Assembly (NCBI GenBank): GCA_050084985.1
Contig: JBITNC010000001.1
Coordinates: 43,834,001 to 43,898,000 of the forward strand
DNA from: Nageia nagi
Lineage: Eukaryota; Plantae; Pinophyta
Reading direction: 5' to 3'
Length of the DNA: 64,000 nucleotides
How positions within the stretch are numbered: the stretch's first letter is position 1; each line of letters starts with the position of its first letter. The position numbers and the translations under genes were made by a program. The notes under the pieces are model-generated. The model worked only from the letters and a program-made list of their open reading frames with translations. It did not search any database and was not told the origin of the DNA. This document shows, in pieces, positions 27,691 through 54,009 of the stretch.

Positions 27691-27828
27691 ATGGGGGAGT
27701 GCACTCTCGAAGACTGGGTAAGGCAGAAGAAAACGAAGAAAACAGATGAGGAAGGTATTCCATCAGAGGTTTCTACTACATCATCGGATGAAGCCAAAGA
27801 CGCTAAACATCAAGAAGAAACTGATCAG
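27691..27828 (+). CDS. Probable coding exon 1 of the KT/HAK/KUP gene (46 codons, MGECTLEDWVRQKK...EETDQ)
   Basis: ATG at 27691, open frame, CAG|GTATGT donor in phase 0 matching the phase-0 acceptor at 44140. Lies in a CpG-retaining region. Hydrophilic N-terminus is plausible for HAK proteins. Confidence 0.65.
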
Positions 27829-29415
27829 GTATGTTGAATTTTTTTAGTGTTATTGTTGCTTGTTTCGTGGTCGGAATGAATTCAAGTAATCATGGAGCTT
27901 AGAATATTTTGTCGTAGTATAATTTCAACCAGACTTCGAATCTTTAATACAATACATATAAACTTGAAGTTTAAAGCTTTAATTGAACTAATATAACATC
28001 TTTAAATATTTCAGTTAGAAATTTTCTGACAATATCTGTCAGTGGAATAGAAATGGATTTTTTCGTACTCGAATAAGACATGCAAAATGTGGAAGAATAC
28101 ACAAGGCACCGGAATTGTTTGATGCAAACAAATTTTCATGGACTGCAATGATCCCAGGATATCTAACACAATTTAATTTAGAATACAATGAAAATGCCAT
28201 GAATGTGTATGCACAAAATGTTCCTTTCTATATTCGTAATCGTTATTTTCATCCAAATGAAAGCAACTAGAGGTGCGAAAGACAACATGTTCAAATCCAA
28301 AAAAACCAAAGAAAAAGACATCTGATTATATAGTCGCCACTTCTCAAAGCTAATAGAGCAAAACATAGATACGCAAGCTGAAGTAACTGAATACATAGAA
28401 AAACTAAAGGATTGCTCACAACGAAGACATGGACTTGGGACATAAAACTTCACCTCGCGAGCTGCATCTAGGCCTTGCCATCCTGGTGAACAAAATCTTT
28501 TATATATATATATGACTCTCACTATCTTCGCACATCTAATTAGAATATTTTTTCTACCCATTTCAGTAGATCAATTTAGCATAAAGGCCATTTGAGTAGA
28601 TCAAAATTTAGCATAAAGTCCTCCGCTGATTTCACTAGAGTTCCAAAAACTAGATAAAAGCAAGCACAGTAAGCATGTAACAAGCAAAGCTTACTGCATC
28701 TACTAACAAACTAAGAAAAATGACTTCAATTCTTCTAACAAATTGCACGAGCCGAATCCGACCATATATCCCTACACTATTCTGCTGATTCTACTGAAAG
28801 CCATATATCCTACACTACAGTTAATTCACAACTTTTACCTTTTCTAAAACTTCATGAGAGATTTCAGCAGGGATTTTCGAGAGCAAGGCAATCAACAATA
28901 GAAAAGTTGAAGAAACGATGAAGCAACGGAAAGCCATCCCAATATCTAAGAGACAATAACATCGGCACCTGTAACGCAGCTTCACCCACCTCGTTGCGTC
29001 GCTCCCAGCCATGTATCCACATGCATGTTAGTTTTAAATTAGGATTTGTCTTTCTTTTTTCTTTCGTCCCATGAAGGACAACATTCATATAGTTATATAT
29101 TGTTCCCCAGCGTATCGTGGCGATGGCGAATCTGTAACATTACCTGCATAGCAATTAGGTGGAGATTATTTATTCCTAATATGGACAGGTTGTAAGCTTG
29201 CAGTTCATCGATCTAATCCAGATGAACATCAATGATATGATTTATTAATTTCCGTAGACAATTAAGTTTGAAGATTTGGATTTTATTATATTGTTCTGTT
29301 AATCTTTTTGTATTATCTTTATTTATATGTTAATTTTTTTTATTATTTTTGCTAGCTATTTTTATTATTTGATTTTTTGTTGTATTATTTATATAGATAT
29401 ATTGCATACCATAGT

Positions 29416-29494
29416 TGTGAGGGGAGTTGGTGAAAAAGGGAGTTGTATAAAATCTCAAAAGGGAGGCCCTTGGTTCAAATCTTTTCCCCTCACA
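29416..29494 (+). mobile_element. tRNA-derived SINE-like head
   Basis: Perfect 10-bp inverted repeat TGTGAGGGGA/TCCCCTCACA encloses an A-box-like GGGAGTTGG and a B-box GGTTCAAATC (29472-29481). Confidence 0.45.
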
Positions 29495-29774
29495 TGCATG
29501 GTATCTAAAAATCCTATCAATCGATCCAAGGATTTTAAACAATTGGTGACCAAAAAAGTTCAATAGGACTTTAAAGTAGGACATATGCAAAGCAACAGAA
29601 GTGCCTAGTGCAACTCAAAACATAAACAAGGTCTATGAATAAGGATTTCTCCCAACATTCAAGGGTGCAAAGAAGTGAGTGATCACCTTGGTGTATCCTG
29701 GTCATGGCTTCTGGAAGCTAGAAAAATGAAGTGAGAAGTTAGGATCCTATTATCCTCTACAAACAATTACTAAG

Positions 29775-30985
29775 TAGTTTTTTTTCTAAGATTAAATAAT
29801 TCTCATATGAAAAGGGCAATGCATCTCTGGTCTTTATAATTAATCCAAGACTTCAATGTATTGGTGTCTCTGAATAAGCAATAATATCTACCTTGTATTT
29901 CTTAGTAGACAAGATAAGTGAAAATGAAATGCTCCTTGGATTCTACATCAAGATTGCACAATCTTCAAATATGTTGATCTCTAGGGAGGTGATGATCTAT
30001 CTCGATATGCAACTAGTGGGAGCAAACTTGTAGCTGAGCTAGAGGAAACTTGAGGTTATGTGGCATCTGTATAAAGTTATATTTTGAAGTAGTGATCAAA
30101 CCATTCTCTAGTTGGAGATAAAGGTGAGAGTAATGGATCAATTTTGGTGAAAGTGGTTCCTTTGGATCAGTCCAAGTAGTTTTTATATATGCTGAGTAGA
30201 TCTCATCTTGAATGTCCTTATTGGAATATGGTGTATTGATTGATGAATTAGTAGGAGGAAGTCTCGTGATGTCTAAGCCAAGAGTTTGAAGTAGAGTAGT
30301 AGTTGGAGCATACCAGCAATTCTTGACCTCTTTATTTGCCAACTGTATAGAGCACTGCAATGCTAAATATGGATATCTTCTCATATCTAGTATAGAATGG
30401 AATCTATATAGTAAAGAGATAACATGAAATAATGCAATTATAAATAATGGGTGATCACTAAACTCAGCTAGAATGATGGGATGTGGAACAGTTCTTTTGG
30501 AACAAATGAACTTGGATAATATTGAGATGAGGACCCTTTCAATACGAGACCAACCCAACTGTCTGATATTAGGGCCCAAAATTCACGAATATAGAGAAAT
30601 GTGGGGGTAATAAGAGTCAAAGAGTTTGATCTTCATACTAATATCCCTAAAACTGAAGCTAAAAGCATTGCTTATCTAAAGAGGCTAAGGTAGCATACCT
30701 TTTGTTTAACCTTACTTGAGATGCAAGGATCATGTTGAAGGTAGGTCCCATGAAAAGAACTCCCAAGTATGTGTACGATGTGACAACCTCAATAGCTTTC
30801 CTTTTGTATGTGATGTGAACAAAAGAGAGATCTTTCTTGGGTAGATTGAATGTCTTAATCTTTGTTTTATGTATATTAACTTTTAATCCATGTAAGTCAT
30901 AGTAAGTTCCAAGTATGTCTAGTTGTTGTTGAAGTCATATTGCTATGTGTGACATTAGGATAATATCATCAACAAATAGAAAATA
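29775..30985 (-). mobile_element. 5'-truncated non-L1 LINE (RTE/RTEX-like) 3' end
   Basis: FLFVDDIILMS, YTYLGV, ORF 30013-30579 ending LAQLQVCSH, then a CCHC-like remnant (RLCNLDVESKEHFIF). T-run near 29778 corresponds to a minus-strand poly(A). Confidence 0.75.
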
Positions 30986-33900
30986 TAATTAATTCAATTG
31001 TAATTATTTTCAAACAAGTTATACAAATACAAATATAGGTATAAACACAATAAGTTTGAATTAAATGTAAATAGCATCACTAGTCTATTAGAAATTAAAA
31101 AAATATAGATCATTATAATATTTTGAATATCTTGAAAGTATAACAATTATAACATAAATCTTGTACTACCTCTTGGAATTGATGATAAAAAAATGATAAT
31201 AGTAACAATAATAAGAATAAAAATAATAAGAATTTATAATAATCATAATATAGTTCTTAAAGGTTTGAGCATTTTGTTTTATAACAATAATTATAAATTA
31301 TCAAATTTAAATATAAAATTTAGATTTTAAATTTTAAATGTAAAATATAAATTTAAAATATGAAATTTTAATATAAACTTTAAATATAAATTTCTAATAT
31401 AAAATATAAATTACAATTTTTAAATATGAAATTTAAATATCATATTCAAATATAAATTTTAAATTTATTAATAATAACAACAACAACAATAATAATAATA
31501 ATAATAATAATATCAATATCATCTTTAATATGCAGTGATCTCATGATATGCACAAAATGAATTTTTTTGAAAAAACTTTATAGACCTTTAAACATATGCA
31601 ATTGTCAGGTGTAAAGTCAAATTCTACAACCCTTGCTAGCATTACTTTCAAAATGTTTAATCAAATTCCAACCATTACTTTCTAAATATTTGATAGAACA
31701 AGAAATTCAAAAAAATCTAACATGTGTACAGCTTTTGAAAATTTGCAATATAATAACAAACTTCGTAATTTTTGACATAAATTTTATTTAAAGCTTTTCC
31801 AAAATTAGCTCTAATGATTCCCTTTTTTCTTAATAATTAATCTTTTTTATTTCTTCATATTTTCATACTCTTTTAAATATTTTAAAGCTAAACATTATTT
31901 TATATATTTTACATGTAAACCCTCTTTACAATCCTTCTACATGCTTATTTACTAGCAATTTTTTTATTATATTAGCTTCAATTTTAATTTCATTTTATAA
32001 TTCTTTCATAATTTTCAACTTATTAAAATATGTATCATTATTATTGTATGATTATTGTCAACTTGAATGATTGAAATTTTTGAAACTTAATATACTTTAA
32101 AAAACCTTTCTCAACCACAAACTTTGGCACTACCTTTTTTTTTACATTTTGTAAAGTTCTTGATATTTTCATCTTCAAATGGTGATAATTCATCACCATT
32201 AAATATGTTTTTAAAGGTAGCATATCATTATTAAAATGAATGTCTCCAAGAGATGATAATTCTTTTTCAATTTTAGTTGAGATGTGTATGAAGAATAAAG
32301 TCTCTATTTTACTCTTAACTTTTAAATAAACAAAAATTAAAGGCAAGATTCAAATTCATGTAGCTCATGTAAATGAAGCTATTAATTTAATTATTGATAT
32401 ACTAAATTCTAATTACAAAACTATAGAAATAGACCCCAATGCTAATTGATGTTTAGATTAAAATTGAAATTTAAAATTAGAATATCAAGATTTAATTTCA
32501 ATAACAAGCATTTTTTGAATTCCTTAAATTGAGTGTTTAGGTGGAAAAACCCAAGGAAGCTATTAGAGAGGATACAAAATGGTAAGACATATTGTACAAT
32601 TTTCCTTTATGTATGAACAAGATATTCATGCTTTAATATACAATTAGGCTTGCATTTTGATGCTTTGTTTGAGAATATAAAAGAAAATTATTGCAAGAAC
32701 AACATAGAGAAAAATAATAGGAAGAAAACCACTATAATCGCCTTCAATCTACATCCCTTTTTGAAAGTCCACCATAGCCAATCTAATTTCATCGATACCC
32801 CATATTACAAGAACAAGCTTTTTGAGTAGCGTAGTAGCGATCATAGATGGAGACACTTCCACATAAGTGTGATTGATCATATGAGACATTTTTTGGCTAC
32901 CTCGTAGAAATCATAATTAGAGAGGACATCCTAAATTCCATCACTTTTCAAAATCAAACATTCATCAATATCAATCTTGTCCTAAGGAGGAGAAGGAGGG
33001 TTTTACAAATAGGTTGCTTGATTTTTATCTTCCTATTTAAGGAAAATCATCACAAACCTTCCCTCCTATTTTTCAAATTTGAAATTTGAATCTTTCCCAC
33101 CATTCTATGATGTGAATGATGTGACAAATTTCCATTAGATGGGAGATGGTTGATAATTAAAAGGGGAGGTGGACTAGCTAGAGGAATGAGGCAAGGGCTA
33201 TGGATCACTATTAATGGAGATGAATGTGGTCAATAAGTCACATACAACTCATAAGTTGTTTAACTTTAGCATCCCATATGAGTCCAAACTAACCTAGGGG
33301 GTTAGTACAATCATTGCCAACAATAAAATACTTAATTGGTAGCAAGGTCAAGGATATAAAATTTAAAAAAAAAAAAAAAAAAAAAAACTAACTACCCAAG
33401 GAAGATAATAACTAAATGCATCTATCAATCATTAAGAGGGGTATTATGTTGAGCATCATGATCAGATGAGGTACACTTGCAATCACCCTACATGAAATTT
33501 CAAATATTATATGAAATGGAAACTTATCTCATAGTATCATGAACAACATTAACTCTTGTATCACTCTAGCCAGTGTTAGTAGTACCTCCTATATTGCCTC
33601 AACCAATGGTGATATTAGAAGACTCCAATTATCCATCATCCCATCCCCCAAATTGGTAGGAGGAATGAGTAATAAAAATTACACTTTTTTCAAAATGGCA
33701 AGGGATGTGTCTAGTATTTGTTTATGGGAGAATTTCTATAAGCAGAGGCACACCATACATAAGAAGGAGGTCAATGACAGGAGCAAGAACATGAGCATTC
33801 CTAATAGCCATGATTTAGATGGACTTAACTGATGCTACATGAAGCATTTGCCTAATGCATTAGAATATCTTGCAAGTGATCAACCTCCATAACAAATTTG

Positions 33901-34456
33901 TTACTTTGTGTAATAATTTGTAACCAGAAGTCATGAAAAATCACTTATTAGTCAAAGATGCCAAAATAAATAAAGGGAGAGTAATTTATAAAAATGAATC
34001 TGTTACAATATTTTCAAATATGAAAAAGCAATTTAATATGCAAAATCTATAAAAATTCAAAAAAAGTAGAAGACTCATAATGATAAAATCTCCTAACAGA
34101 GCATTAGTCCATGAAACTTTGGATGAAAAGAATGGAGAGAAAATTGAAAACAACTATTATTAAGCTTATCTAGATCTACTGCAGCTTTAAAATAAGTAAA
34201 AATATGACTCAAGTTCATAATAAAAAGGATATTTAGGGTCTAAAATACCCAAATACTTCAATATATCACCTACAAGGACATCTAAATTTAAAAATCTCCA
34301 TGCAAAAAAGGTTTTTTGGGTTCCACATACGATGCCCAAACATTATGAAATCTAGAGTTCCATATAGACTTGGTAGAAACCAAATCCCACTAATCATTTA
34401 ATCTAGACACCATATGACGATCTCATGAGAACCAAGTATATCCCATGGGAGCTTTG

Positions 34457-34898
34457 TGAAGGATTTAAACCTTAAAGAATAACATTCTAATCTCCCAAGA
34501 TCACTTGAAAGCCCTCTCAACCATCAATAATTCAACATAATAACCAATATTACAAATTTAACACACATCTAAAGTGGTTTCTCTCATACAAGAGAGTACA
34601 TACACTAACTAAGATCTTTCTCATTCACAAAGTGCCTCTCCTACAACTCTTCCTACTTCTCCTAACAATCCTAAAGCATAACAACACTACAAACTTGAGT
34701 GTAAACTTAAGTGAGAAAACTAGAAGGGAGGCCCTCTATTTATAGGGCAAAATCCTCCCTTTAACTACTATTGTACCCAAGGGTTAGGTTAAGGTTACAT
34801 AATATTTTATTCACTAAACACTTAAAGATATCTAGAGATATTTTAATTTTTAAGTGGGTTACAAAGAAGAAGAAAATAATGCATTATACATTCCAATA
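34457..34898 (-). mobile_element. Solo LTR of family A (copy 2)
   Basis: Perfect TSD CTTTG at 34452-34456 and 34899-34903. Homologous to 575-1076 and 58227-58723. Confidence 0.85.
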
Positions 34899-37800
34899 CT
34901 TTGTAGTTGAATAGAGTAATATCAACATGTCATCTCTAATTAGTCCATCATGGACACTGAGAGTATACCCCAATCTTGTATAGTATAGAAAATGAGGTAA
35001 GAGTAATGATATCATCATAAGTATCTTTATTCACATTAGATAAATTAAACTTGAGTTTGAATTCATTCCAAGAGATCCAATCTCTTGTATACTGAGAAAA
35101 TAAATCAATAATAGAAACTATCCTATTTCTAAAAAATTGTAGAGCATGAATCCAATGAACATGATAAAAGGGGATTCTATGATTTAGAAGCATATGAAAC
35201 CACCAAATATTCATTTAATTCAAATAAAACTCCATGAAAAATTAAAACCTTTCCATTGCAAACAAGGAGTAAGATGTTGCCAAGCCTTCCAAATACTTTA
35301 GATGACAAAAGAGCCTTGAATCTTTACAAACATTGAAGTAATAATGAGTGAAGGAAAATCAAATCCTCTCCATGCTCGATGATTTAAAGGGAGACCTATA
35401 GATATGAAATATCAAACAAGGATCTTTTAGGACTCATTGCCTTTGAATTATCTAATCACCCATTTGGTACAACAAGCTAAGCCTTTCCATTTACAATCTA
35501 ACAACCCCATACAACCCAAAACTTTGGGGAGGTAACAAGTATCTCATGTTACTCTATTAAAGCCCTTTTTCATAGAAGAATTAGACCAAAGGAAGTTGCA
35601 AAAAAAATTTCTAATTTCTTATAACATGCTTGAGATGGCACCCAACAGGAAGAGTAATAGACATGAGTAGAAGAAAATACTTTGAAACAAATTTGAAACT
35701 TACTAGCTAAATAAAGTTTTTTTATAAACCAATAATCAACTATTTTTTCAATTTATGTATCACATAATTCCAAATTTGAGTAGGATAACCATGAAACATC
35801 AAAGGAGGACCAAGGTATTTAAAGATCTCACTAGGAAGTATCCAATTCCATTGATATCCCTAAATCCATTTAGGTAGATCATGAAGATATTTCCTATTGT
35901 GTGAAGTTTTCTTCCATTGAATGCCAAAACTTAATGCTTTACAAAAAGTTCCAAACAAGATTAAGAATTTATAACAAACCCTTCATAATCATGGAGAGTA
36001 AGAAAAAAATCATCAATAAAATGGCCATTAACCATATTATCCTGATTATGTTGAGTAATCTATTTGATAAGATCAACTGAGGTTTGATCATCCATGAGGT
36101 AATCAAGGACTTCAACAATAGGCACATAAAGAGGAAAAATAAGACAACCTTGTCAAATAAATTTAAACAAACTTATTACCTCAAGTGGAGAGTTATTCAA
36201 ATTAAGAATAGTTAAGGCATATTTGAATAGCATAGCAATTATCAAGGTGAACATAAGAGTAAATCTTCAAGCTTTGAAGATAGCTTGAATAAACCTCCAC
36301 TCAATGTTATCATAACCTTTCTCAAAATCAATTTTAAAAAAGAGCATATCCTACCTAGATATCCTAGCCATTCCATTTCCTTCTAGATAACCAAAAAATT
36401 GTCAAGAATATATCTTCCTTTGATAAAGCTAATTTTCTTATACCTAGCAATTAAATAAAGGATTGGTTTGATGCAAAGAGCTAAAGCTTTAACAATAATT
36501 TTGTAACTAACATTAAGTAATGTAACTAGTATCCAATTAGGAATCAATTCAAGATCTTCTTTCTTGGGAATAAACTTGATATTACCCATGTTGATAATTT
36601 CTCTTAGCGAACCAACATTCATAGCTTCCAAATGGACCTTATGAAGGTCAAGGCCAACCATATCCCATATACCTTTATAAAATTCACATGGTAAACTATC
36701 TAAACTTGGAGCTTTATCATTAGCCATTTAAGTTAAATCTTCTTCAAGATCCTGCAAAGAAAGCAATTTATCATATTCTACTCTATGAAATATAGAAATA
36801 TGAATAAGTACTACTATAATAAACTTTGATAAAGCTTGTTCCCTCTTAGGAATATAATATTTTTCTATAAATATATTTATATAATGATAAACAAAGGCCT
36901 CTACAACCATATTAGGAAGACCTATGAGATGAAATCCATTGGCTTGGATAACTTTAAATTGAGTAGCATGTCTAGGATATATGAATCTTTGAAATTTTTT
37001 CTTGAAGACTTTATCACCAATTTGAAGCCTATGCAAATGATCCTTAATTTAATCTCCCTTTTCATTATTGAACTCAACTAATTTTAATTCATGTCTCAAC
37101 TTATCAACATGAGAATGAAGCTCAAGATTGAAAGGAGAAGACTCTAATCGAAGAGAATATTTTGCAAGTTTATCATGAAGAGTAATTTTAGATTTTCTTA
37201 TGAACTGATACACCTTTTTACCCAAGGTGTGAAGCAAAGTAATTATTCTAACAATAACATCATTCCACCATTCAATCCATCCTAAATCACCAATAGATCT
37301 AGTAACTAAGTTCCATATTATGTGGAGGTGACATATCATGGATGGATGTTGAAGGAATGAAGTGTTATAAAAAAGATATTTTTAATACATTTGGGTCATA
37401 TCCTTCTATAAAAAGAGAAGATATTAGCAGAGCATGATCAGAGTTGGTATTACTAGAGATAGTCTCAACAACCAGGGTAGAGGCATTTTTTCTAAGAAAG
37501 AAATTGAGAATGATATGAAAGAATTGCTCTATCAAGTCTTTTGAGTATATATACATTGATAGCCTGAAAGTTAGACCATGTATACTAAATATTTTTAGAA
37601 AACTATTGGGGAGAGAAACAAGCATTAGGATCTGATATTCCTAGCTTATTTTTATACAGTACCAATCTTCTCACTCACCCATATCCCATCACATGGTAAG
37701 CTTTCCTATCTTGTCATAAGGTTTCTCAATCATATTGAAATACTTGTACATAACCCAAATAACTAGTGGTAATGATAAAGTGCATCATCATCAAAGGGTA

Positions 37801-39659
37801 TAATGCTTAGGAGCTTCATTGAAAGCATATACATTTATAATACCAAAAGAAGTTTTACTTACTTCAATCAGAATCTAAACTACCTAATTAAATGGGTCCA
37901 CATCCTAGATAACAAAATTATCTTTCCACCTAGCTATGAGGAGGATGACATCACCCCCACTACTAGTAGCATGATTGGTGGCATAAAAATATAACCAAGA
38001 AATAGAAAGGGACAAGTGCACTGTAAAATTAAATTTAAAATTTTAATTTCTTGTAAATAAAGAAAGTTAGTATTACCATAATTTCAGGAGAATAAATACT
38101 TTTTATCTCTAACCAAGTATTTATGGACTAGGTCTATCAATCCTCTGGTCTATCAATCCTCTAATGTTCTAAGATAAAAAAAATCATGTAATATGATCCA
38201 TTATCATATTAACATTAAGGTACTCAACATCTCCTATGTTTGATAGAGAATCATAAGCATTTCAAAATAACTACTTATGATTGAAACTACCAAATTCCAC
38301 TTAACACTTCTTATATGTATTCCCTATATGGTCACTTTAAAGAGGGCTATGGGAATATTATCCATTGATAAGAGGTGTATCAAGCTTCTAAGAGCTTTAT
38401 TAATGCTCAACCATTGCATGTAAAAGAGGAGAGTTAAGGGATTGAGTGGTAGTTGTAGAAGAGATAATTTCTATAATAAAAGAAACCATAGGTGGAACAC
38501 TACCAAGAGTGACCACCACATTGGAATTAGTTAGTGAAGGGGTGGCCACCACACTAGAACTAGTTGGTGATGGGGTGACTATCACTCTAGTATTAAGTGG
38601 TGGTTGACTCATATGGGGACAATTGGAACTATAAGGAGTAGCATTATTATTATCTTATTTCATAAATTTCCCTTTTTCCTAGAGCATAATCCATAAATCT
38701 TTCCCTACTTAGGAGTGAGGGAAGTATTAGAGGTAATAGGAGCTGCCTCTTTAATTTTTTTCTACCATAAGTGGGCAATCCTTAATCTTGTGAGCATTGG
38801 ATTGGTAATGATAAAAAGTAATCTATCGGTTATAAATAACTTATTATTTGAAGTGATAATTAACCATTTACATATAAACATAATCTTTAAGGTATTTGGA
38901 TAAGTAATCTTGACACATAACCTCTTTTGAGGGAAGGAGGTATAGAATCTATCCATTTCACAACAAACAAACTCCCCAATAGGTGAACATAACTATTGAT
39001 AATAGGAATAAAGTAGCAAAGGAATATTGGTGAGCTAAACCCATATCAAAACCCTCAAAGAAACCTCATTAGTGATTGAAAATATTTTGGTACATGGTTG
39101 AAAACCAAAAGGTAACTACAGACAAACCATGGCCCATGATTAAGTACTACTTGAGCTTAAGTAGGATCAAAAAATTGAAAAAGAAATAAACCTTTTATCA
39201 TATTCTAGATACCATCAACTTTGAATTGATGCCAAGTTTGTTGTATCATGGTCCTAATGATAGACTCTATAGAAATACAATCAAGAAAATAACCAACTAG
39301 TATGTGGTTTTCAATCCAAGAATAAAGATTGCTTGAGCTTAAGTGGGGTTATCAAATCAAAAAAGAAATAACCCTTTTATTATATTCTAGATATCATAAA
39401 ATTTGAATCCATGCCAAGTTTGTTGTATCATGGTCCTAATGATAGACTCTATAGGAATACGACCAAGAAAATAACCAACTAGTATGTGATTTTCAATCCA
39501 AGAACAAGTGTTATTGAACTCACTCAATGAGATAAAAACTTATTGAAGAGACATATTACCTCATGGAAGACCTTGGGAATGAACTTTTTGGGTTTCTTAT
39601 TCACCCTATGAGCCATTTCTTTCTCCTATAACTTCAACAAAAGTTGAAGATCCGTAATG

Positions 39660-42027
39660 TGTTAAGAACCCACTTTTGCATAGTAACCCAATTATTCAAA
39701 AATATACATAAAATCACTCTAATGTGCAAATATCATTCAAATATGCAAAACCATTATAAAATACCACTTAATGAAGTAACTGAATCACCTACACCACTTC
39801 AATAAGGAAACCTCTTAGAGAATAATTTATCTCCTCAAATGAAACTATATTTCTTGCTTGATTCCTTACAATTGGAAAGGCCTCATATAATTAGCCCTTT
39901 GTGATCTTTCACCTTCCAAACCTAATACATGTGGGATAAATAGCAATATGATATAAAATAACATGTTATGGGGTCATAACATCACCACCCCCTTAAGCAA
40001 GCTTTGTTCTCAAAGCTTGTACACACCATACATCAAAAGATAATAACCTACACATATTAACATAATTCCACCATATATCACAATAAAATAGCTTACTAAA
40101 CTACTAAGGAGGTTCATTACATTGCCAACCCATTTGACAAGCTTTGTCCTTAAATATTGCAAAACTACAAAGTACAATCCCTCCATAAATAATAGAGAGC
40201 TCCATAAATAATAGTAAACAACCAAGAAATCCAATTCATCCAAAGTGGCCAACAATACACCAAATCTGAATAGGAGCTCATACGAGTATCAAAATTGCAC
40301 TAAGGTAATGATAATAATATTATTAAGGAATTAGAAATAAAAATAATGATCCAAAATAGTCAACAAAGAAATTGCCACATTGTTGTTGCATTCTAAAGGC
40401 CTCTTATGATGCTTTGAAGTCTATATGTTGTACTCTAAAATCCTAGCATGAATACTTCATGAAATCATGTTGCACCATTATATCCATAGAAATATAAGTG
40501 AAAATAATATCCTTCACACTCTATAATAAGCTCCACTAAACTAGAATAAAAAGGCTCCACATAATCTATACTAATATAAGTGAGAGGAAGGGCCTCACAC
40601 TCTACAACATGCTCTTCTAAATTCAAAAGAACTACCTCCACTAGTTCCTTATGAAGAAACTCATCATCATAGAGTAGGGTATTAGGAATATGAATATGTT
40701 TCTTTTCCATTTTTGTATATTTGTTTAATATATCCTCAATATTCCTAAGTGCATCATCATCTTGTGCCAAATCATCACCCATTCTTTACAATACATCACT
40801 ATCCCTTTTAAAAAAAATATTAGAAATTAAAATTGCTCCATCATTATTAAAATAAATCAAATACTCTTGAAATTTTTAATACAAATATAAACCATGAATT
40901 AGTATCCAATTATGAAAGTGCATCAAAAAAAGATATCATATACAAAAGTTATGAAGATTTCATCTTTTCCCCTTTTTATCAATATCCTAATCACCAATTC
41001 TATCATAAATTGTCCAAAATGACTTGAAATCATCTAAAATATTTATTGAATAATCTTTATACAAATATGTAAAACCCCACTATATTTAATAAGCAAATTC
41101 AAACTAATAATAAATATGTAGTCATTTTACTCATGCCCCTTGTAGATCTTAGAGTGTTTATAAAGAGACCCTAATATTATTCACACAAAATCATCAATAC
41201 AACTCCCAAAATTCTAAAATTTAAATAATGTACTCTTGAGATAATAATTTTAAAACATTTTAAATTTCAAAATCAAACTCAAAAGGATGAAAATTATATG
41301 ATCAAATACTTTTTTCCTTTTTCACAATTCTAGATCTAGGGTTTTTAAGAGGAAATACAAATCTTCTCATACATCAACCAATATCCAAACGATTTGAAAT
41401 TTTGATAGAATGATTCTCTTATCTAAAACAAACTTCTCCAAAAATTTCAAAATCAAAATCCTTTTTTTCAAACCTATACAACCATTTTATTGCAAAACAT
41501 CAAATGCTTATCAAATCCACAAATGAGCTCCAAAATACATAAATATCTATTGATCCTTCTTGATGTGATTATCTACAAACCCTCAAAATTTAACATAAAA
41601 TTCCTTTGGATGTGTGTGATATGAATGATTCACTCAAGCTAGCCAAAAAGCCCTTCAACTTCTTCCACTTTGCCCATAAGTACTAAGATCATGATCTGAT
41701 AACAATTGTTAAGAACTCACTTTTGCATAGTAACCATATTATTCATAAATATACATTAAACCACTCCAATATGCAAACACGATTCAAATATGCAAAACCA
41801 TTACAAAATACCACTTACTAAAGTAACTGAATCACTTACACCACTTCGAGGGGGGTACCTCCTAAAGAACTGGTTCTCTCCTCAAATGAAACTATATTTC
41901 TTGCTTAATTCTTTATAATATGGAAGGCCTCATAAAAATAGCCCTTTATGACCCTTCACCTTCCAAACCTAATACATGTGGCATAAATACTAATATGAAA
42001 TAAATAAAATGTTAAGGGATCATAACA
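39660..42027 (-). mobile_element. Non-autonomous LTR element (large TRIM/LARD-like), 2.37 kb
   Basis: LTRs at 39660-39981 and 41707-42027. TSD TAATG on both sides. Degenerate Met PBS at ~41693-41704 and PPT at 39982-39996, both on the minus strand. No gag/pol motifs found. Confidence 0.9.
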
Positions 42028-42269
42028 TAATGAGTTGCATCCATATATAAAAGTGACAATCCAACAAATGGTGGAATCAATTCATTTGAAGCCAATCAAT
42101 AAATATCAAATATGAAGTCCTACACAATCTCCCAAGTGAAGTTGTGGTATGAGATATACAAAAAAATTAATGCATGAAGTTTGGCTCTCCAATGCAACAC
42201 TCAAAGTGATCTCAAAGATAAATATACAAATATTTAAAAAAAAAAAAAAAGTAAATTAAAAATAGCATT

Positions 42270-43258
42270 ACCTTTAGAGTTATCACTTTTGGATAGTTTT
42301 GGTGTTCTTATTTTCATATCTTTGATCTTCTTGTCATACTCACAAGATTTATGGTTTTACTTATCACAATAAGTACACTTTCCTTGGAACTTCAAGTTAT
42401 AGTTCTTACTATGCTTGTGTGAACTAGCTCTAAAATTACACTTCATATATTTTTCTTAGATATTGTATTAGACATTTTCCCATAAATATTAATTTATTTA
42501 AACATACAGAGCCCAATTGTGACTACTAACTTCCTTCTCTTTTTGTAATCTCTTTTCTTTGTACATCAACTTAACATATAATTCTTCAAGTTTAATACCA
42601 AATAATTTATCATCTTGAGTTTAAGGATTCCAATAATGGTTGGTAAGATATCAGAAGACTTTGTAAAATTATATGAATGAAATCTTTATCCAAGCTACAA
42701 ATGTTTTATCTCTTCTCTCAATCATCAATATATTTTTTATAATTAGATATTGTTTCCTCACTACAAATCATAAGTTTATAAGAATTCTTTGGTTTTAATA
42801 ATATCTCTATATGAAATGCTTAATCATAAAAATTCTTACCTTTTATCTTGATTTTAGTAAGAGGAATGCCAAAAAATTCTACTTCAAAAAATATTTTTAA
42901 AAAATATGAAATATAAATCATACACATAAATATTATTAAAAAGATTTAAAGCATTCTTAATGAAAGATGACCTTGCTTTTAAAGGTTATTAAGTGATCAC
43001 AAAAATAATATTCTTCATGATACAATAATGACTATGGTATCATGTTAGAAAATTGAATAAATTGAACACCAATAAATTTAATTGTTTAAAATAAAAATAG
43101 TTTAAAATAGTTTACTTTATGTTCATGAATACTAAAATTTAATATAACTTCAATGTTATAATATGTTTATTTTTGTTTCTTAAGTTGTACACCTAATATT
43201 TATACTTCTATATTTAAACTATAAATATAAAATAATAATTATATTATGCATTCCAACA
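42270..43258 (-). mobile_element. Heavily decayed LTR element: 5' LTR, PBS and gag zinc knuckle
   Basis: TGTTAG...CCAACA segment at 43043-43258, PBS-like TGATACCATAGT next to it on the minus strand, and GKCTYCDK*NHKSCE near 42340-42385. Confidence 0.55.
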
Positions 43259-44140
43259 TATTGAGAGTTGAAAGTTATTTTGCACTATCTTCACTGGTAA
43301 TTATTTATTTTGAGATATATTTTCATTTCAAAATTTAAGAGAACTTCACCTAATTGAATTACACAATAGAATAGAATTTAAATGGGATTTCTTGCTAACT
43401 CTTCACATTATATCATGATTGTTATTTACAATGAACCTGCAAATAAATATAAATAAATTACTTAATAAAATATTTGAATAGATCATAAAAAACATAGATA
43501 TAATATCAATTCATTGTAGGAAGGAATGCTACATTTCTCTATCATTTGCATGCTACAATCAAACTCTTCCTTGCTTGATCTATTGTTAATGTGCCTAATT
43601 AACAACCTTTATCCTACTAAAACTCTGACAGTGATGAGATTTGAAGGTTTCGAACACATCCATTTGAAAAATGAAAGCTAATTTTCTAACTTGTAAGAAA
43701 GCATGTCAGATATGTGGAGCCTATGACCTTCAATATCAAGGTAAATGCTATTTCCATAACCTTGAATACTTCAAATGACAATGGATGTATTTGACTTCGT
43801 TGCCAATTTCAGAGTGGCTGTAGTGGATCCACGTGTTCTAGTGAGCCTTATTGAATGTGGTAAACATCATTAGAATTTTTTGAAATGAAATTGAAAACAC
43901 TAAAACATAACTCCACAACGGTGTGAAATGTGAACTATTCATATTTGTCACCGTCTCTCATGATATTTTTTCCACCCAGATGAGTCAGCCAATGTATATC
44001 ACAACATTCTGATTTATAAAAACGATTACTCGATATTGCGAACTATCACCATTGACAGGCTGATCTTAATAATTGTTTATTTAGTTCAAATATATGTGTT
44101 ATTTACTTAAGTCTGATATATGTATCCAAATGTCTAGCAG

Positions 44141-46218
44141 CTAAAGCACGGCCCTGTAAGGATGCAGAGCAGTCTTGACAAGAAACTGATTAGGAAGAGG
44201 GAGAGCTTCAGCAAACGGCAGCCTCTGATAATGGCTTATCATATGCTTGGGGTAGTTTATGGTGACCTGAAAATTTCTTCACTTTATGTGTTCTCTCAGA
44301 CCAATATCAAACACCCAGATGAAGATGACATTCTGGGCATCTTCAGTCTCATCTTTTGGGGGCTTACACTGATTGGCCTAATCAAATATGGTGGAGGTAA
44401 GAGACCAATTTTCCTTTCTGAAGATTGGTAGACAATAGCAAAGTGATGGAAACAAAGTTATTGGCCCATATGCAATTCAGACAGCACATATAACAAATAT
44501 TTTTGCCGTTTTCAGGTGGTACATTTGCAGTTTATTCCCTTTTGTGGAGACACTTAAACATTGGCCAGATAAGTGGGCGTCACCAGTTAGATGTAATTCC
44601 ATCAACCAATCAGCCCAAAGGAACTGTTCACCTGTTGGCAGGAAGATTGCTAGAGAAAAACCAATATGTTAGAAAACTTTTGATAACCTTTGTAATGGTT
44701 GGTACTTCCATGGTTATTGTTGACGGTGTTCTGAATCCTACCATATCAGGTAACTTAAATTTTCTTAGTCTTAATTTACTTGACAGGATATTTGATGAAG
44801 CTAATGATTTGGATAAGAAGTCCATCGTTCGTAGGTTCTATGAAATTCTATAGACATATTTTTTATGAACTATGGACAGATACATAAAAATTCAAATTTC
44901 CCTTGCCTAATATCTAGTGATGACTACTTATTGTTTCCAGTGCTTTCAGCCGTCAAAGGAATCCAGTCAAAGAATCCTGAAATGGGCACAGGTAAGCAGT
45001 AGATGTAGCATGACTAATAATTTATCAAGTCAAGAGAGTAAAGTTCCAAAAAATGTCTCAGATTTGGAAATTCTGATTGATGATTGTTTTTTTCTGTTCA
45101 CAGAGGTTTTTGTGCTCATATCAACTATTATTTTGATCATTTTTTTCGTCGTGCAAAAGCATGATACCAGTAGAGTGGGCTTCGTCTTCTCACCTATAAT
45201 GGTTGCTTGGTTTCTTTTTGCTGGGATTGTTGGTGCATATAACATTATTGTGTATTATCCAAAGGTATTCAAGGGAATGTCACCTCGTTATATATTTCAT
45301 TTCTTTTCCAAGAGCCAAAAGCTTGGATGGACAATGCTAGCAGCTGTTTTCTTATCTTTAACAGGTATACTACTAACAGCTAAACATGTAGAGTTTCTTG
45401 TTCAACGTAATGCTTTTAGCCATGAAGGAATATAAATAATATGAGTACCCATTTCGTGTCATACAAAATGAATTGACTATTCTTAAATTTCTAATCAGGC
45501 CATGAAGCCATGTTTACTGATCTGGATGATTTCAAGATAGCATCAATCCAGGTTCATACTATCCTTTGACAAGTATTAATCAAGGTAGCAATGAATGTTC
45601 TATGTCTACATTTAATAAAAGATGCTTGAATTTACATTGCAGCTTCGTTTCAGGGTGGTAGTATACCCAACCTTGGTCATAATTTACGCTGGACAGGCAG
45701 CTTACCTGATCAAGCATCCAGAGCACATAGGTGATGTATTTTACAAGTCAACACCTGAAGCCTTTTTTTGGCCCATGTTCATAGTTTCAACTTTGGCATC
45801 CACTGTCACTAATCTGGGAAAGATAACTGCAACATTCTCGATCATAAAACAGTCAGTTGCATATTGTGTCCAACCTCGAAATGTTCAGAACCACAATTCT
45901 GAGGACAGTGAAGAGACTGCTGAAGGAAAAAATTCTGAGGACAGTCAGAATCACAATTCTGCTGGTGTTTCAGCTATGCATGAATCTGAAGGAAAAAGGA
46001 AGGCTAAAAATTTCAAAAGAACATCTCAGAGGAGTGAAGTTGCTTCGAAACACACCATGGAAATACTGAAACAGAATCAATTAATGCTGCAAGATATACT
46101 GGAGTCAGGGAAGAGGATGAGCAGTATGTTGATGAAAAATTTTGATGATGCATCGACCCTCTTAAAGGATATGGAGTCTAAAATCGACTCTATACGCAGC
46201 TTGGAAGATTGTCTCTGA
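44141..46218 (+). CDS. KT/HAK/KUP potassium-transporter-derived chimeric CDS; exons 44141-44396, 44516-44749, 44941-44991, 45104-45364, 45499-45551, 45643-46218
   Basis: Family motifs GVVYGDL, GGTFAVYSLL, DGVLNPTISVLSAV, FSPIMVAW, EAMFTDL, YAGQAAYL and TFSIIKQSVA. All introns are GT-AG with consistent phases. Sequence after ~45863 is not HAK. Family call is firm; whether it is functional is unknown. Confidence 0.85.
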
Positions 46219-46399
46219 TGGACATTAGTCTGGTTATTTTTATTTCTTTCTATTATTGTTTCTTACCGACGAATAGTTTGTGATGCATGTTGTTAGGTAC
46301 TAGCGTTACGGTGATTTGTTTTGTGTGCACGTTTTTGGAAATTATATGGGTATGTAGTAAAATGTCTGCGAAGCTTTCAAAAACCCCTCAAAAGGACAC
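45863..46399 (+). other. 537-bp foreign insertion (coding tail plus 3'UTR-like sequence) flanked by a 10-bp duplication
   Basis: TCAGTTGCAT at 45853-45862 and 46400-46409. The HAK reading frame resumes after the second copy. Confidence 0.85.
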
Positions 46400-46409
46400 T
46401 CAGTTGCAT

Positions 46410-46935
46410 TGAACTGCTTTCAACCAGCTACGATTGTTCATACATCTCAACTTCAGGAAGAGTACATCTACAGTCCCGAAGTCAGCTATTCTCTCATTGT
46501 TGTACGTCTTGCTTTTCTATTAGGCTTGGGAAGCCAAAAGCCAATTTGTAATACCTATGCTAATGCCAAAGATTTGAATCATCTAAAACATTTCATTCAT
46601 GCAGAAGTAGAATAAGGATTAGATGTTATGGTTTACAGTATATTATATCCTTGATAGTAAGATTAGTACCAGTTAAGGTCAATATATACAATGACAATAA
46701 TCTTTAATTCATGGTTTGTTTTTGCACAGGAGTAGTTGTGATATGGGTCATGATCACATTCCTAGTGGGTATGGACATGATCGTTATCTGCAACACCCAT
46801 ATATTGCTAGTGCTGCCCTTCTGAATGGTGTTTGGCTTCACCGAAGGATTTTTCACGGTGGCAACCATGGGCAAGTATCCAAAGGAGAGTAGGTCCTTTT
46901 GGTATTTCCGCATTGTTACTGCTCATTATTAGAGC
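46410..46935 (+). pseudogene. Orphaned, decayed 3' part of the HAK gene (rest of exon 7 and exon 8)
   Basis: LNCFQPATIVHTS..YIYSPEVSY. The expected donor at 46560 reads CT instead of GT. Exon from 46730 (GVVVIWVMIT) has TGA at 46822-46824 and a later frameshift. Confidence 0.85.
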
Positions 46936-46958
46936 TTGTTTTGAGGTTTTGTCTTAAA

Positions 46959-49900
46959 TGGTATCAGAGCCAAGTTCTGGTTCTGGACTAGAACTAAGTT
47001 TGGTTTAGAGTCGACGCTAAGTTAATATTAGGGGTTTCAGTCCCTTGGTATAGCTTAGTCGTTCCTTTGTATATGTAGTCTACTCATATATCAATATAAA
47101 GCTCTATTTTGATTTATATTTGTTCTCTGTATATCCATATAACGCTCTATTTTGATTTATATTTGTTCTCTATGATTGGAAATAAGTTTCTATTCTCGGC
47201 ATACTATTGTATACTGGTTATTAGGGTAAGTCCAAGTAAATTCTATGTTAAAGCCGATGGATAGGCGTGAAAGGACAGTGGTAGTCAAATTCCAATGACG
47301 TGAGTTTTGGTACAAATGGCACATGAGATTAGTACTTCTTCAAGCACAAAATCAGGTATGGATCTTACAAATGCTTTTATAAATTTGGGTAGTGCTCTTG
47401 ATACTATGAACAAAGCAAAAATCTTAATAGATGAAACAGAACCACTTCTTGAGTGATCTTTTCCTGCAGTAATAGTTAATGATGTTTATAGTGGTCTATC
47501 TATCTTTCATTTGCATACAAAATCATTCATTCATTATAAATAACAAATTATGCATGTTTCACAAAATAGTGATAGTCAACATTTTGTGTCTATTTTAGAA
47601 GTCGATAAAATACAAAAAATTCAAAAAAAACATTTTGCGTTTAAATTCTTGCATTTAGGCATGCTACAAGTCAGTATAACTCCTCTTACTAGAAAATGTC
47701 TACAAACCTCTTATGTAGCCTATGTTCCAAATTATCATCATAATAAGTTTTCTGATAGTTTGATAGATGCAATCAGTACATCCTTATATGATAGTCCCAA
47801 TACCATGCAAGTCTATCCAAACTATCTAGTTTCAATAAATGATCCCCATCTTGACAAAGTTCTAAAAATATGTGTTCACACACATGGGTTTGACATGAAA
47901 GCTAGTGCAAATTATCTTGCAATCCACAACAGAGTTATATATAGATTCACCAATACATTACAACCTGTATTCAAGCATGGTGTAGTGAAAGGATCTACAG
48001 TTGTGTTAAAAACTGATTCTAAAAATTAGAAAATAGAACCGCAACTCATAGAATGGAAAGATGTCCAAATCCCAAGGCAGTGGACATTAGATACAGAATT
48101 TCTTGATGAACCTATATAATAACTATTACCAAAGATCTCTATTAAAAAAGGAAAAGCTATTATAGATCTAGAAATAGAGTCTTTTCATAGTAGTAGTAGA
48201 TTTAGTGAACCAGAATTTTCAAATGAAAAACTAAAAGAAAAAGACTTTTTGGAAGGACTTCCTAAATCCCAGACATCAAGAAGATCAATTGATCATCGAT
48301 TCTGCACACACACTAGCTTGGTTCCATTAAACCAAGATTCTTTCAAATATTAGTGTCAAGAATGTTTATCTCTTCTAAAAAGATCATTTAATGTAAATAT
48401 GTTTTATAGAGAAGTTTTTGAAGATAAAGATATAGATTGGGAAATAGAAGATGATAAAAAGGTTCAATCTTGGTTTGTTTGTATAATTGCTAAAGGAGTA
48501 GAGCAATCCCCTATAAAAAAATCCAAAATTGGAATAATGTTGCAACTTCTTCTATTAATAAAAAGATTGATTCTCTAATAGATATTCTTAAGAGAGCAGA
48601 AGAAACCATAGAGAGAGCACACTCTAGAAATAGTATCATTATTGAACCATGAATAGAGTCTCTCCATGAGAAAATTGATTTATTGACTTTAAAAGTAGAA
48701 TCAAAGAAATCTACTTCATATTGGGAACCTAAAGAGTCAAGTCATGACTCTACTTCTTCTTTTGAGATTCCTACTAGTACTCAAACCTAATGTAAAGTAA
48801 AACAATTGGCTGAAAAGTTAGCTTTAGTTGAGTTCACTAAGAAATCATTTGAAAAAGATTTTCTTACAGATAAAAAGGTGAATATGGCACAATCTTACAT
48901 GTCTAAGATTTTTAATGATGAAGAAGGTTCAAGAGAAACTTCTCAAACCCAACCTATAAGTAATACAACAAGAACTCAAAATCTTTCACCTTTTTATTAT
49001 AAAATTAAATGTAAATCACCAAAACAAATCCATGAAATGATCCATGGCATGTTAGGATGGTCTAACACCTAGGTAGAATAGCTAAATAAGGATCCTTATA
49101 CTATAGCTTAGCAAGTAGCTAATAGATTTGTTGGTATTTTAAATGAGTGTTGGGATGACATCACAGAACAAAATTAGAGATTAATTCTATATAATATCAT
49201 AGTTGGCCTCTATAGTACTATTATAGCAGAATCTATTGGAAGCCTAGAATAAAATTTTGAGATTGCCAAACAAAAATTCATATTAGCTCAAATTTGTGAT
49301 ATGAGTAAACTTAAAAAGTATCGATGTAAGATGCAAGGATGGTACTATAAAATACATAATGCATTGATGAAAATAAGGTACATTAAATTATTTCTTGAAT
49401 TCTTGAAAGAGGCTTATAAAAAGAATATTGTTGTTTTAGGTCTTAATATAAAAACTCTTTCTTTTGCTCGAATCAATCAAGTTATTGATCAAACTCATAG
49501 AGAGTTGTGTCTAGAACAAAGAAAGAAGAAAGAATTAAAAAAATAGCATAAAATTTTGAGAACTTCATTCTATCAAAAAAATATAGAAGACTTTGGTTGT
49601 TCTTACAAACCAAAGAAAAAGTTTCTCAAAAGTAAACAATTTCATAAATCTTATAAGTTTTCTAAATGCATAGATTGTAAGAATTTTGGTACATCTTACA
49701 AGAAAACTCCATGGCATAAAAGGAGAGAAGTCTTCTGTAAGCAATCACATTTTTCAAAGAAACATGTTAAGTATTTTATCTATAATGGGTCACATTATGC
49801 TATGAAGTGTCCTTAAAAGGAAAAATTTAATGCCCAAAAAAAGATTAATATGATTTTTTTCTAGATTTATGTGAATATAATTATTAATTAGTGTTAGATA

Positions 49901-53509: not shown

Positions 53510-53784
53510 TTGCATAAGAAGCAAATAAGAAATAGTAGCAAAAAATCAAATCATTATAAGAAGAGACAATATTTAACAAGGTTCACTCAATATGAGCTAC
53601 ATCCCTAAAGGAACTTTCAATTATTTTGCATCCATCAATCTTTCAAACCATCAAGAAATACACCAATAATGTAGACATATTGAGACACTTCAACAACATA
53701 GACTTGTTGTAACTCTTTCTTTGGTACATGAAACCTCACAACAACATGAAACCTCACAACAACATGAAACCTCACAACAACATG

Positions 53785-53840
<56 letters not shown>

Positions 53841-53848
53841 TCTCTCTC

Positions 53849-53931
<83 letters not shown>

Positions 53932-53953
53932 CTCTCTCTCTCTCCTCTCTCTT

Positions 53954-54009
<56 letters not shown>

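Follow-up and report, generated by a model that had tools for sequence, protein, structure and literature searches.

A probable transcribed chimeric pseudogene of HAK/KUP/KT origin in Nageia nagi

The transporter exons and the inserted fragment

The window studied here is a stretch of 64 kb from the genome of Nageia nagi (GCA_050084985.1, contig JBITNC010000001.1, positions 43,834,001-43,898,000 of the forward strand), which is AT-rich with a G+C content of about 30%. It holds part of a duplicated gene for a potassium transporter of the HAK/KUP/KT family, whose reading frame leaves the transporter within exon 7 and continues into an inserted fragment of foreign sequence. A sequence-only reading of this stretch had joined seven exons into an uninterrupted frame of 522 residues with all GT-AG sites intact, and had proposed that the resulting chimera is expressed and perhaps retained as a new membrane-anchored protein. 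We checked this model exon by exon together with the phases, never joining exons for searches or folding. The seven stretches (138+256+234+51+261+53+576 = 1569 nt) have the entry phases 0, 0, 1, 1, 1, 1, 0, each internal boundary is AG/GT, the exons contain no in-frame stop, and the codons divided by introns are GGT, GTG, GAG and GGC; the chimeric frame ends with a TGA at 46216-46218. Boundaries, phases and the lack of stops are thus as proposed, whereas the first exon has neither homology nor read support (see below).

Pfam K_trans (PF02705) matches exons 2, 3, 5 and the HAK part of exon 7 (7a), as well as a remnant behind the insert (46409-46612); there is no match in exon 1 or in the tail encoded by the insert. 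The bit scores of exons 2, 5 and 7a are 47.5, 76.9 and 68.8 at a cut-off of 24.8, which places them in the family. All five matching pieces are colinear with the solved structures of AtHAK5, whose chain numbering is the native numbering plus 13. Exon 2 (44141-44396, plus strand like all features below unless stated otherwise; E = 1.2e-12) covers the transmembrane helices TM1 and TM2 (chain 63-127), exon 3 (44516-44749) chain 141-222, exon 5 (45104-45364; E = 1.4e-21) chain 239-322, and exon 7a (45643-45861; E = 4.2e-19) chain 342-412, ending in ...KQSVA. The short exon 4 (44941-44991) passes the phase check, and both of its flanking junctions are used in reads of a related organism (X3, see next section). 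Exon 6 (45499-45551) retains the glutamate equivalent to E312, but its motif has become GHEAMFTDLDDF.

At the 3' end of exon 2, a 30-nt in-frame deletion has removed a conserved segment of about 10 residues, so that the equivalent of AtHAK5 chain 128-140 is shrunk to GGG in the window copy. Between 44389/44390 and 44514, related organisms have 34-35 letters more than the window, and these code for the conserved stretch missing here. The deletion is spanned by a contig (X1) that is 99.7% identical to the window over 353 nt and probably comes from the same species.

After KQSVA, the HAK frame enters an insertion of 547 bp and stays open for another 118 codons. The inserted fragment (45863-46395) comprises the coding sequence of the tail (45862-46215), the stop, and a T-rich non-coding part. 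It is bordered by a direct repeat (ACAGTCAGTTGCAT / ACACTCAGTTGCAT; 45849-45862 and 46396-46409, no strand assigned), a target-site duplication whose copies are 547 nt apart and identical in 13 of 14 positions, with 10 nt perfect. The HAK frame picks up exactly at 46409, and deleting one repeat copy with the intervening sequence restores the canonical HAK ...KQSVA-LNCFQPATIVHTS...; two distant genomic HAK fragments (P0001, P0002) have a continuous exon 7 free of the insert. Among 20,000 dinucleotide shuffles, 2 had an entry frame open for 118 codons (3% when any of the six frames was allowed); the open frame is not due to chance. The N-terminal half of a HAK protein does run in frame into a foreign insert that encodes about 118 residues.

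The insert has purine-rich first codon positions and its T content rises from 24% to 40% past the stop; by composition, it probably derives from a coding sequence, of which it keeps the 3' end and an untranslated tail. It has no poly(A), its 3' end reading ...CAAAAACCCCTCAAAAGG(ACAC), and its inverted ends comprise only 6 nt (GTGTCC...GGACAC), the left one offset by 3 nt, with no longer terminal inverted repeat (TIR) found. Searches with tblastn and blastn found no second copy within the window. The proposal that the insert brings its own stop and a tail resembling a 3' untranslated region agrees with the TGA and the T-rich sequence behind it, but the transcript of a relative continues into the downstream exons.

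No homologue of the tail was found in Pfam (E up to 0.1), among 1.84 billion protein representatives searched with phmmer, or in the ESM Atlas, so that the idea of a captured tail lacks a detectable parent. The only relatives of exon 7 plus tail were P0001 and P0002, both tail-less, in a search whose length filter hides full-length HAKs. In a single-sequence AlphaFold model of exon 7, residues 80-111, which are acidic, are disordered and residues 114-190 form one long helix, with a predicted local distance difference test score (pLDDT) of 87-97. Of the coiled coil suggested for the tail, the long helix is thus predicted, but the heptad pattern is only moderate (hydrophobic residues at 0.55 of a/d positions versus 0.31 overall).

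Behind the insert, the rest of HAK exon 7 (46409-46559; AtHAK5 chain 414-464, including the equivalent of Y450) is open, although it lies beyond the stop. Its canonical donor is lost (CT at 46560-46561), and a cryptic GT is located at 46502. The next HAK exon (46730-46929) is decayed: it has a TGA at 46822-46824, has lost 1 nt near 46872 that the intact paralogue retains, and is cut at 46929/46930; its stretch 46732-46820 has no match in the PDB alignment. At the cut, a caulimovirid-like element begins (46930-46971), with the tRNA-Met primer-binding site TGGTATCAGAGCC at 46959-46971. A six-frame motif scan of the window up to 64000 found no HAK C-terminal motifs. At 46894-46929, orthologous and paralogous contigs from three related organisms diverge from the window, and what follows in them is absent from it, as is a 30-nt continuation present in a relative. 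Since the relatives do not have the element, its insertion is lineage-specific and younger than the 547-bp insert and than a pairwise divergence of about 7-8%. The decay described earlier for the region downstream of the insert is therefore real, down to the end of homology at the viral border. Beyond the viral element, the window contains three tandem 18-nt units (AACAACATGAAACCTCAC) followed by about 270 nt of an imperfect (CT)n microsatellite (53730-54040) and, on the minus strand, an AT-rich region that gives the impression of a decayed copia-type retrotransposon coding region (54100-56000).

The proposed exon 1 (27691-27828; 46 codons from ATG to GT) lies 16 kb upstream of exon 2 and is unsupported as a part of the gene, with no Pfam match and no read evidence; an open stretch of 46 codons from ATG to GT is easily found in 16 kb. 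An in-frame TAG (44135-44137) directly precedes the proposed acceptor of exon 2, and upstream all three frames are stop-rich. Further, the paralogue has a 1-nt indel at 44155, within the 21 nt that would join exon 1 to an ATG at 44162. This ATG, with an A at -3, is the likely native start, giving about 469 codons, and is more economical than exon 1; an additional exon upstream of it is conceivable. The supposed intron 1 of 16.3 kb contains decayed transposon ORFs, none of which reaches a Pfam family at E up to 0.01. Among them is a chain of 85-114-residue ORFs on the minus strand (34900-37650), which reads like a decayed LINE reverse transcriptase and likewise has no Pfam match at this threshold.

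Sharing and transcription in related organisms

One search for sequencing runs of any kind found none recorded as RNA and none in which over 13% of the sampled words occur; no holder of RNA of the window's own species was among them. Three related organisms (X2, X3, X5) yielded contigs 85-95% identical to the window, of two types in each organism. Contigs of the first type, which represent the intact paralogue, have a k-mer depth of 10-16, differ from the window by 11-14% in non-coding sequence, are free of the insert and alone carry an extra A at 46872. Those of the second type, which represent the orthologue of the window copy, have a depth of 4-7, differ by 7-8%, contain the insert and show the state of the window at 46839-46872. 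The insert-bearing contigs cover 45773-46398 in X2 (record 7), 45798-46151 and 46149-46441 in X3 (records 14 and 15), and 45968-46900 in X5 (record 22). Related species, in which the sequence-only reading had suggested looking for the junction, thus share the insertion. Common to three organisms at about 92-93% identity, the insertion is old; given the features shared by the contigs of the second type, the duplication, the insertion, the donor loss at exon 7 and the frameshift had all occurred before these organisms diverged.

Within 46149-46398, the insert-bearing contigs of X2 and those of X3 both exceed the window by 19 letters. If this difference lies before the stop at 46216, the C-terminus of the tail differs between species.

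The paralogue of X3 is represented by a contig (record 13) that skips from 45847 to 46395. We considered whether this skip could reflect excision of the insert as an intron and rejected it: no GT..AG pair exists within the 11-nt ambiguity of the skip, whose ends are AA..AG, and DNA runs contain insert-bearing and insert-free forms at different divergence.

The X3 run behaves as RNA. Its contigs skip from GT to AG at 44396/44516, 44749/44941, 44991/45104, 45364/45499 and 45551/45643, the latter two junctions coming from a low-depth contig, and its depth is about 0 in intron bins and 4-8 across the whole insert, including the non-coding part. Record 14 crosses the chimeric junction and 290 nt of the tail without a gap. 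All five introns between exons 2 and 7 are therefore verified, and in a related species the mature RNA includes the chimeric junction. The proposed expression of the chimera accordingly holds for this relative, whose RNA-like run shows the insert-bearing copy transcribed and spliced; RNA from Nageia nagi itself was not found among the runs.

A low-depth joint of X3 from 46501 to 46730 combines the cryptic GT at 46502 with the normal acceptor at 46729. Such a joint is expected only from a copy that lacks the canonical donor, as the window does, and hence the insert does not end the transcript. In the relative's transcript, a splice junction therefore follows the stop at 46216 by about 280 nt, the layout of a premature stop. 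In plants, an mRNA with a splice junction placed in this way behind its stop is expected to be degraded by nonsense-mediated decay (NMD). That the low-depth contigs of X3 belong to one molecule is our reading of them, as contigs cannot show this.

At 44389-44516, X3 appears to hold three related HAK transcripts. Two of these have slightly different versions of the conserved segment (depths 14.3 and 3.8), and the third (depth 6.3) joins 44396 to 44516 as in the window. The number of expressed copies in this HAK subfamily may exceed two.

Constraint, lesions and competing explanations

Residues that coordinate K+ or are otherwise essential in AtHAK5 are D72, T75, S76, Y79, D201, T205, S209, E312 and Y450 (PMC11450230). 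At the equivalent positions, the window copy has kept D72, S76, Y79, D201, S209 and E312; it has changed T75 to I, T205 to N and also the adjacent G74 to K, and its Y450 equivalent is located behind the stop. The open frame covers positions 2-323 of the K_trans profile, whose full membrane domain is 1-454, with a hole at about 58-70, and contains nothing past AtHAK5 chain 412 before the stop. It thus lacks the last membrane helices and the cytosolic C-terminal domain of a complete transporter. Due to the loss of ligands, the 30-nt deletion and the missing segments, the HAK half cannot be a working transporter.

The differences listed for exons 2-7a comprise 18 non-synonymous and 5 synonymous changes, against a neutral expectation of 2.84:1 from the observed mutation spectrum, although these 23 sites are a small and tool-selected set (41 of 313 differences listed, 272 unseen) in which comparisons with orthologues and paralogues are mixed. 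The counts reject a ratio of non-synonymous to synonymous rates (omega, or dN/dS) of up to 0.3 (p = 0.0017); a ratio of 0.5 is marginal (p = 0.04). The sequence-only reading had named a dN/dS near 1 in the upstream exons as counting against it, and this is approximately what we find. Exon-only records of X3 differ from the window in 58 of 596 nt (9.7%), versus about 12% in non-coding paralogue contigs; the resulting ratio of about 0.8 is what would be expected from one constrained lineage and an unconstrained window lineage. Where the window deviates, the relatives are canonical, with C instead of W (44547), G instead of D (45164), and GTSS in TM1 where the window has KISS. These comparisons suggest that the protein sequence of the HAK half is drifting, with an approximately neutral omega and no sign of the purifying selection expected of a functional gene.

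The locus combines an insertion with a premature stop, a lost donor, a TGA, a frameshift and a truncation with spliced RNA-like contigs in X3, as is characteristic of a transcribed pseudogene. Since the substitutions are neutral-like, we read it as a transcribed chimeric pseudogene derived from a HAK/KUP/KT duplicate and not as a maintained protein, with the open frame as a survivor; we assign this reading a probability of roughly 60%. The anatomy, the old and shared insert, the transcription and splicing in a relative and the lost transport residues are directly shown; the lack of function, the origin of the insert and the order of events are what we infer from these data. A gymnosperm HAK/KUP/KT duplicate would, judging by the comparison with relatives, have been disabled long ago. 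A 30-nt in-frame deletion would have taken out the conserved segment after TM2, a fragment of 533-537 bp would have inserted into exon 7 with a target duplication of 10-14 nt, the exon-7 donor would have been lost and the next exon frameshifted. Later, and in this lineage only, the caulimovirid-like element would have removed the remainder. In one or more related species, the 5' half retains an active promoter and working splice sites and yields an RNA, whose frame happens to continue for 118 codons into the insert. The product would be about 469 residues long from the ATG at 44162, with about eight membrane helices ahead of a disordered acidic linker and one long helix.

Several points weigh against a pseudogene, foremost the distribution of lesions, in which the sequence-only reading was right. 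The upstream part (1041 coding nt, 10 splice sites) has no stop, frameshift or splice lesion and its sole indel is a multiple of three, whereas the downstream part (357 coding nt, 2 splice sites) has accumulated 3-4 small lesions, namely the lost donor, the TGA and one or two frameshifts, in addition to the viral cut at 46930. If lesions were uniform, the chance of finding all small ones downstream would be about 0.003-0.01, odds judged post hoc at a locus chosen for being open. At a per-lineage divergence of 3.65%, where 4.3% of neutral substitutions make stops, the chance of no stop is 0.19, and that of no frameshift is about 0.03-0.2, depending on whether the exons share the indel rate of the neighboring introns. 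Overall, neutral survival of the upstream part has a chance of roughly 0.1-3%, which is mildly surprising. The small and mixed set of substitutions has to be counted on this side as well, and the open frame of exons 2-7 and the tail is that of the window copy. The asymmetry thus favors the reading of the chimera as a gene, yet it conflicts with the neutral-like substitutions.

Were the chimera retained as a new gene, its transport-dead HAK module could act as an anchor or as a partner of the intact HAK, with the linker and helix as a new interaction surface, and selection would have to keep the frame open while tolerating many replacements. Besides the lesion asymmetry and the in-frame nature of the upstream deletion, this would account for an open frame of about 1.4 kb whose survival goes back beyond the divergence of four or more taxa, for splice sites that are all intact and used in a relative, for a record 14 of X3 that is gap-free over the junction and 290 nt of tail, and for a tail with coding-like composition and a confidently predicted helix of 77 residues. 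These points are countered by the neutral-like ratio of replacements and exon divergence, by the loss of K+ ligands and of a conserved segment, and by the NMD-prone layout of the relative's mRNA, as generally understood, with its splice junction about 280 nt past the stop. The tail, moreover, has no homologue and only a moderate heptad pattern (0.55 vs 0.31), and no expression data were found for the window's species. We therefore consider a functional chimera, and with it a retained new gene, unlikely, and retention as a membrane-anchored protein is not borne out by the neutral-like substitutions, the lost transport residues and the orphan tail. In a more specific form of this reading, the transport-dead eight-helix HAK module, joined to a captured acidic linker and a long helix, would have stayed translatable from a time before several gymnosperm species split and would serve as a membrane scaffold or as a modulator of intact HAK transporters. 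This seems quite unlikely; if true, it would be a new protein born of a gene broken by an insertion.

The cleanness of the upstream exons could also stem from gene conversion by an intact paralogue, whose tracts would be limited on the other side by the 547-bp heterology. Each related organism does have an intact and higher-expressed paralogue, and conversion between HAK duplicates appears mechanistically plausible, but over 44381-44962 the window is nearer to contigs of the orthologue type (8.1-8.3% different) than to those of the paralogue type (11-14%), and the persistence of copy-specific states (the 30-nt deletion, W at 44547, the aberrant exon 6) speaks against recent conversion; we regard this explanation as very improbable. 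A role at the RNA level, as a pseudogene-derived non-coding or decoy RNA acting on the intact HAK paralogue, would make the open frame irrelevant. It would fit a copy that is transcribed and spliced in a relative at about one quarter to one half of the k-mer depth of the paralogue, with exons 87-93% identical to it; in these data, such a role is indistinguishable from transcriptional noise at a pseudogene whose promoter is still active, and we deem it highly improbable.

If the locus is a transcribed pseudogene, as we favor, it is an ordinary and well-documented case of a transporter duplicate that decays while its promoter and splice sites are still live. On this reading, it also shows that in a large and slowly turning-over gymnosperm genome, a frame that is open and spliced says little about function. 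If, on the other hand, the orthologues of the relatives all keep the frame, the locus would represent a dated gene birth, brought about by an insertion within a coding exon and putting a membrane module to a use other than transport.

Comparison with known systems

Relative to the HAK/KUP/KT K+/H+ symporters (PF02705; AtHAK5, PDB 25jn, 25le and others), exons 2-7a are colinear with chain 63-412, the equivalents of D72, D201, S209 and E312 are kept, and the intron positions are confirmed by spliced contigs of relatives. The locus differs in the loss of about 10 residues after TM2, in G74K, T75I and T205N, and in an ORF that stops after residue 412 or so.

For the insert, comparison with mobile elements gives a mixed picture. 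A fragment retroposed by a LINE would be expected to have a target duplication of 5-20 nt, into which the 10-14 nt found here fall, but also a poly(A), which is absent. As in a Pack-MULE, the cargo resembles a fragment of a gene, and the target duplication, at 10 nt, fits the 9-11 nt of Mutator-like elements; the inverted ends, however, are of 6 nt only, there are no long TIRs and the window contains no second copy.

Plant chimeric genes (rice chimeric retrogenes, PMC6881317; PMC3673630; L1-like retroposition, PMC4838847) resemble the locus in that a coding-like fragment of foreign origin, which brings a stop and an untranslated tail of its own, is flanked by a target duplication and recruits host exons into one frame. 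In contrast to them, the insert has no poly(A) and no identifiable parent and is not a full retrocopy. Functional plant chimeric genes are further set apart from the locus by an omega below 1 and by expression documented in their own species. Possibly, the locus is a nascent chimeric gene like those that have been surveyed in rice (PMC6881317, PMC3673630).

The transcribed duplicated pseudogenes of plants (PMC7935947) differ from the locus in two respects: here, the first stop comes from a foreign insert that adds 118 in-frame codons, and for its age the 5' kilobase has unusually little damage. In common with them, the locus is a duplicate of an intact, expressed gene; it carries multiple lesions, evolves in a neutral-like manner and is still spliced.

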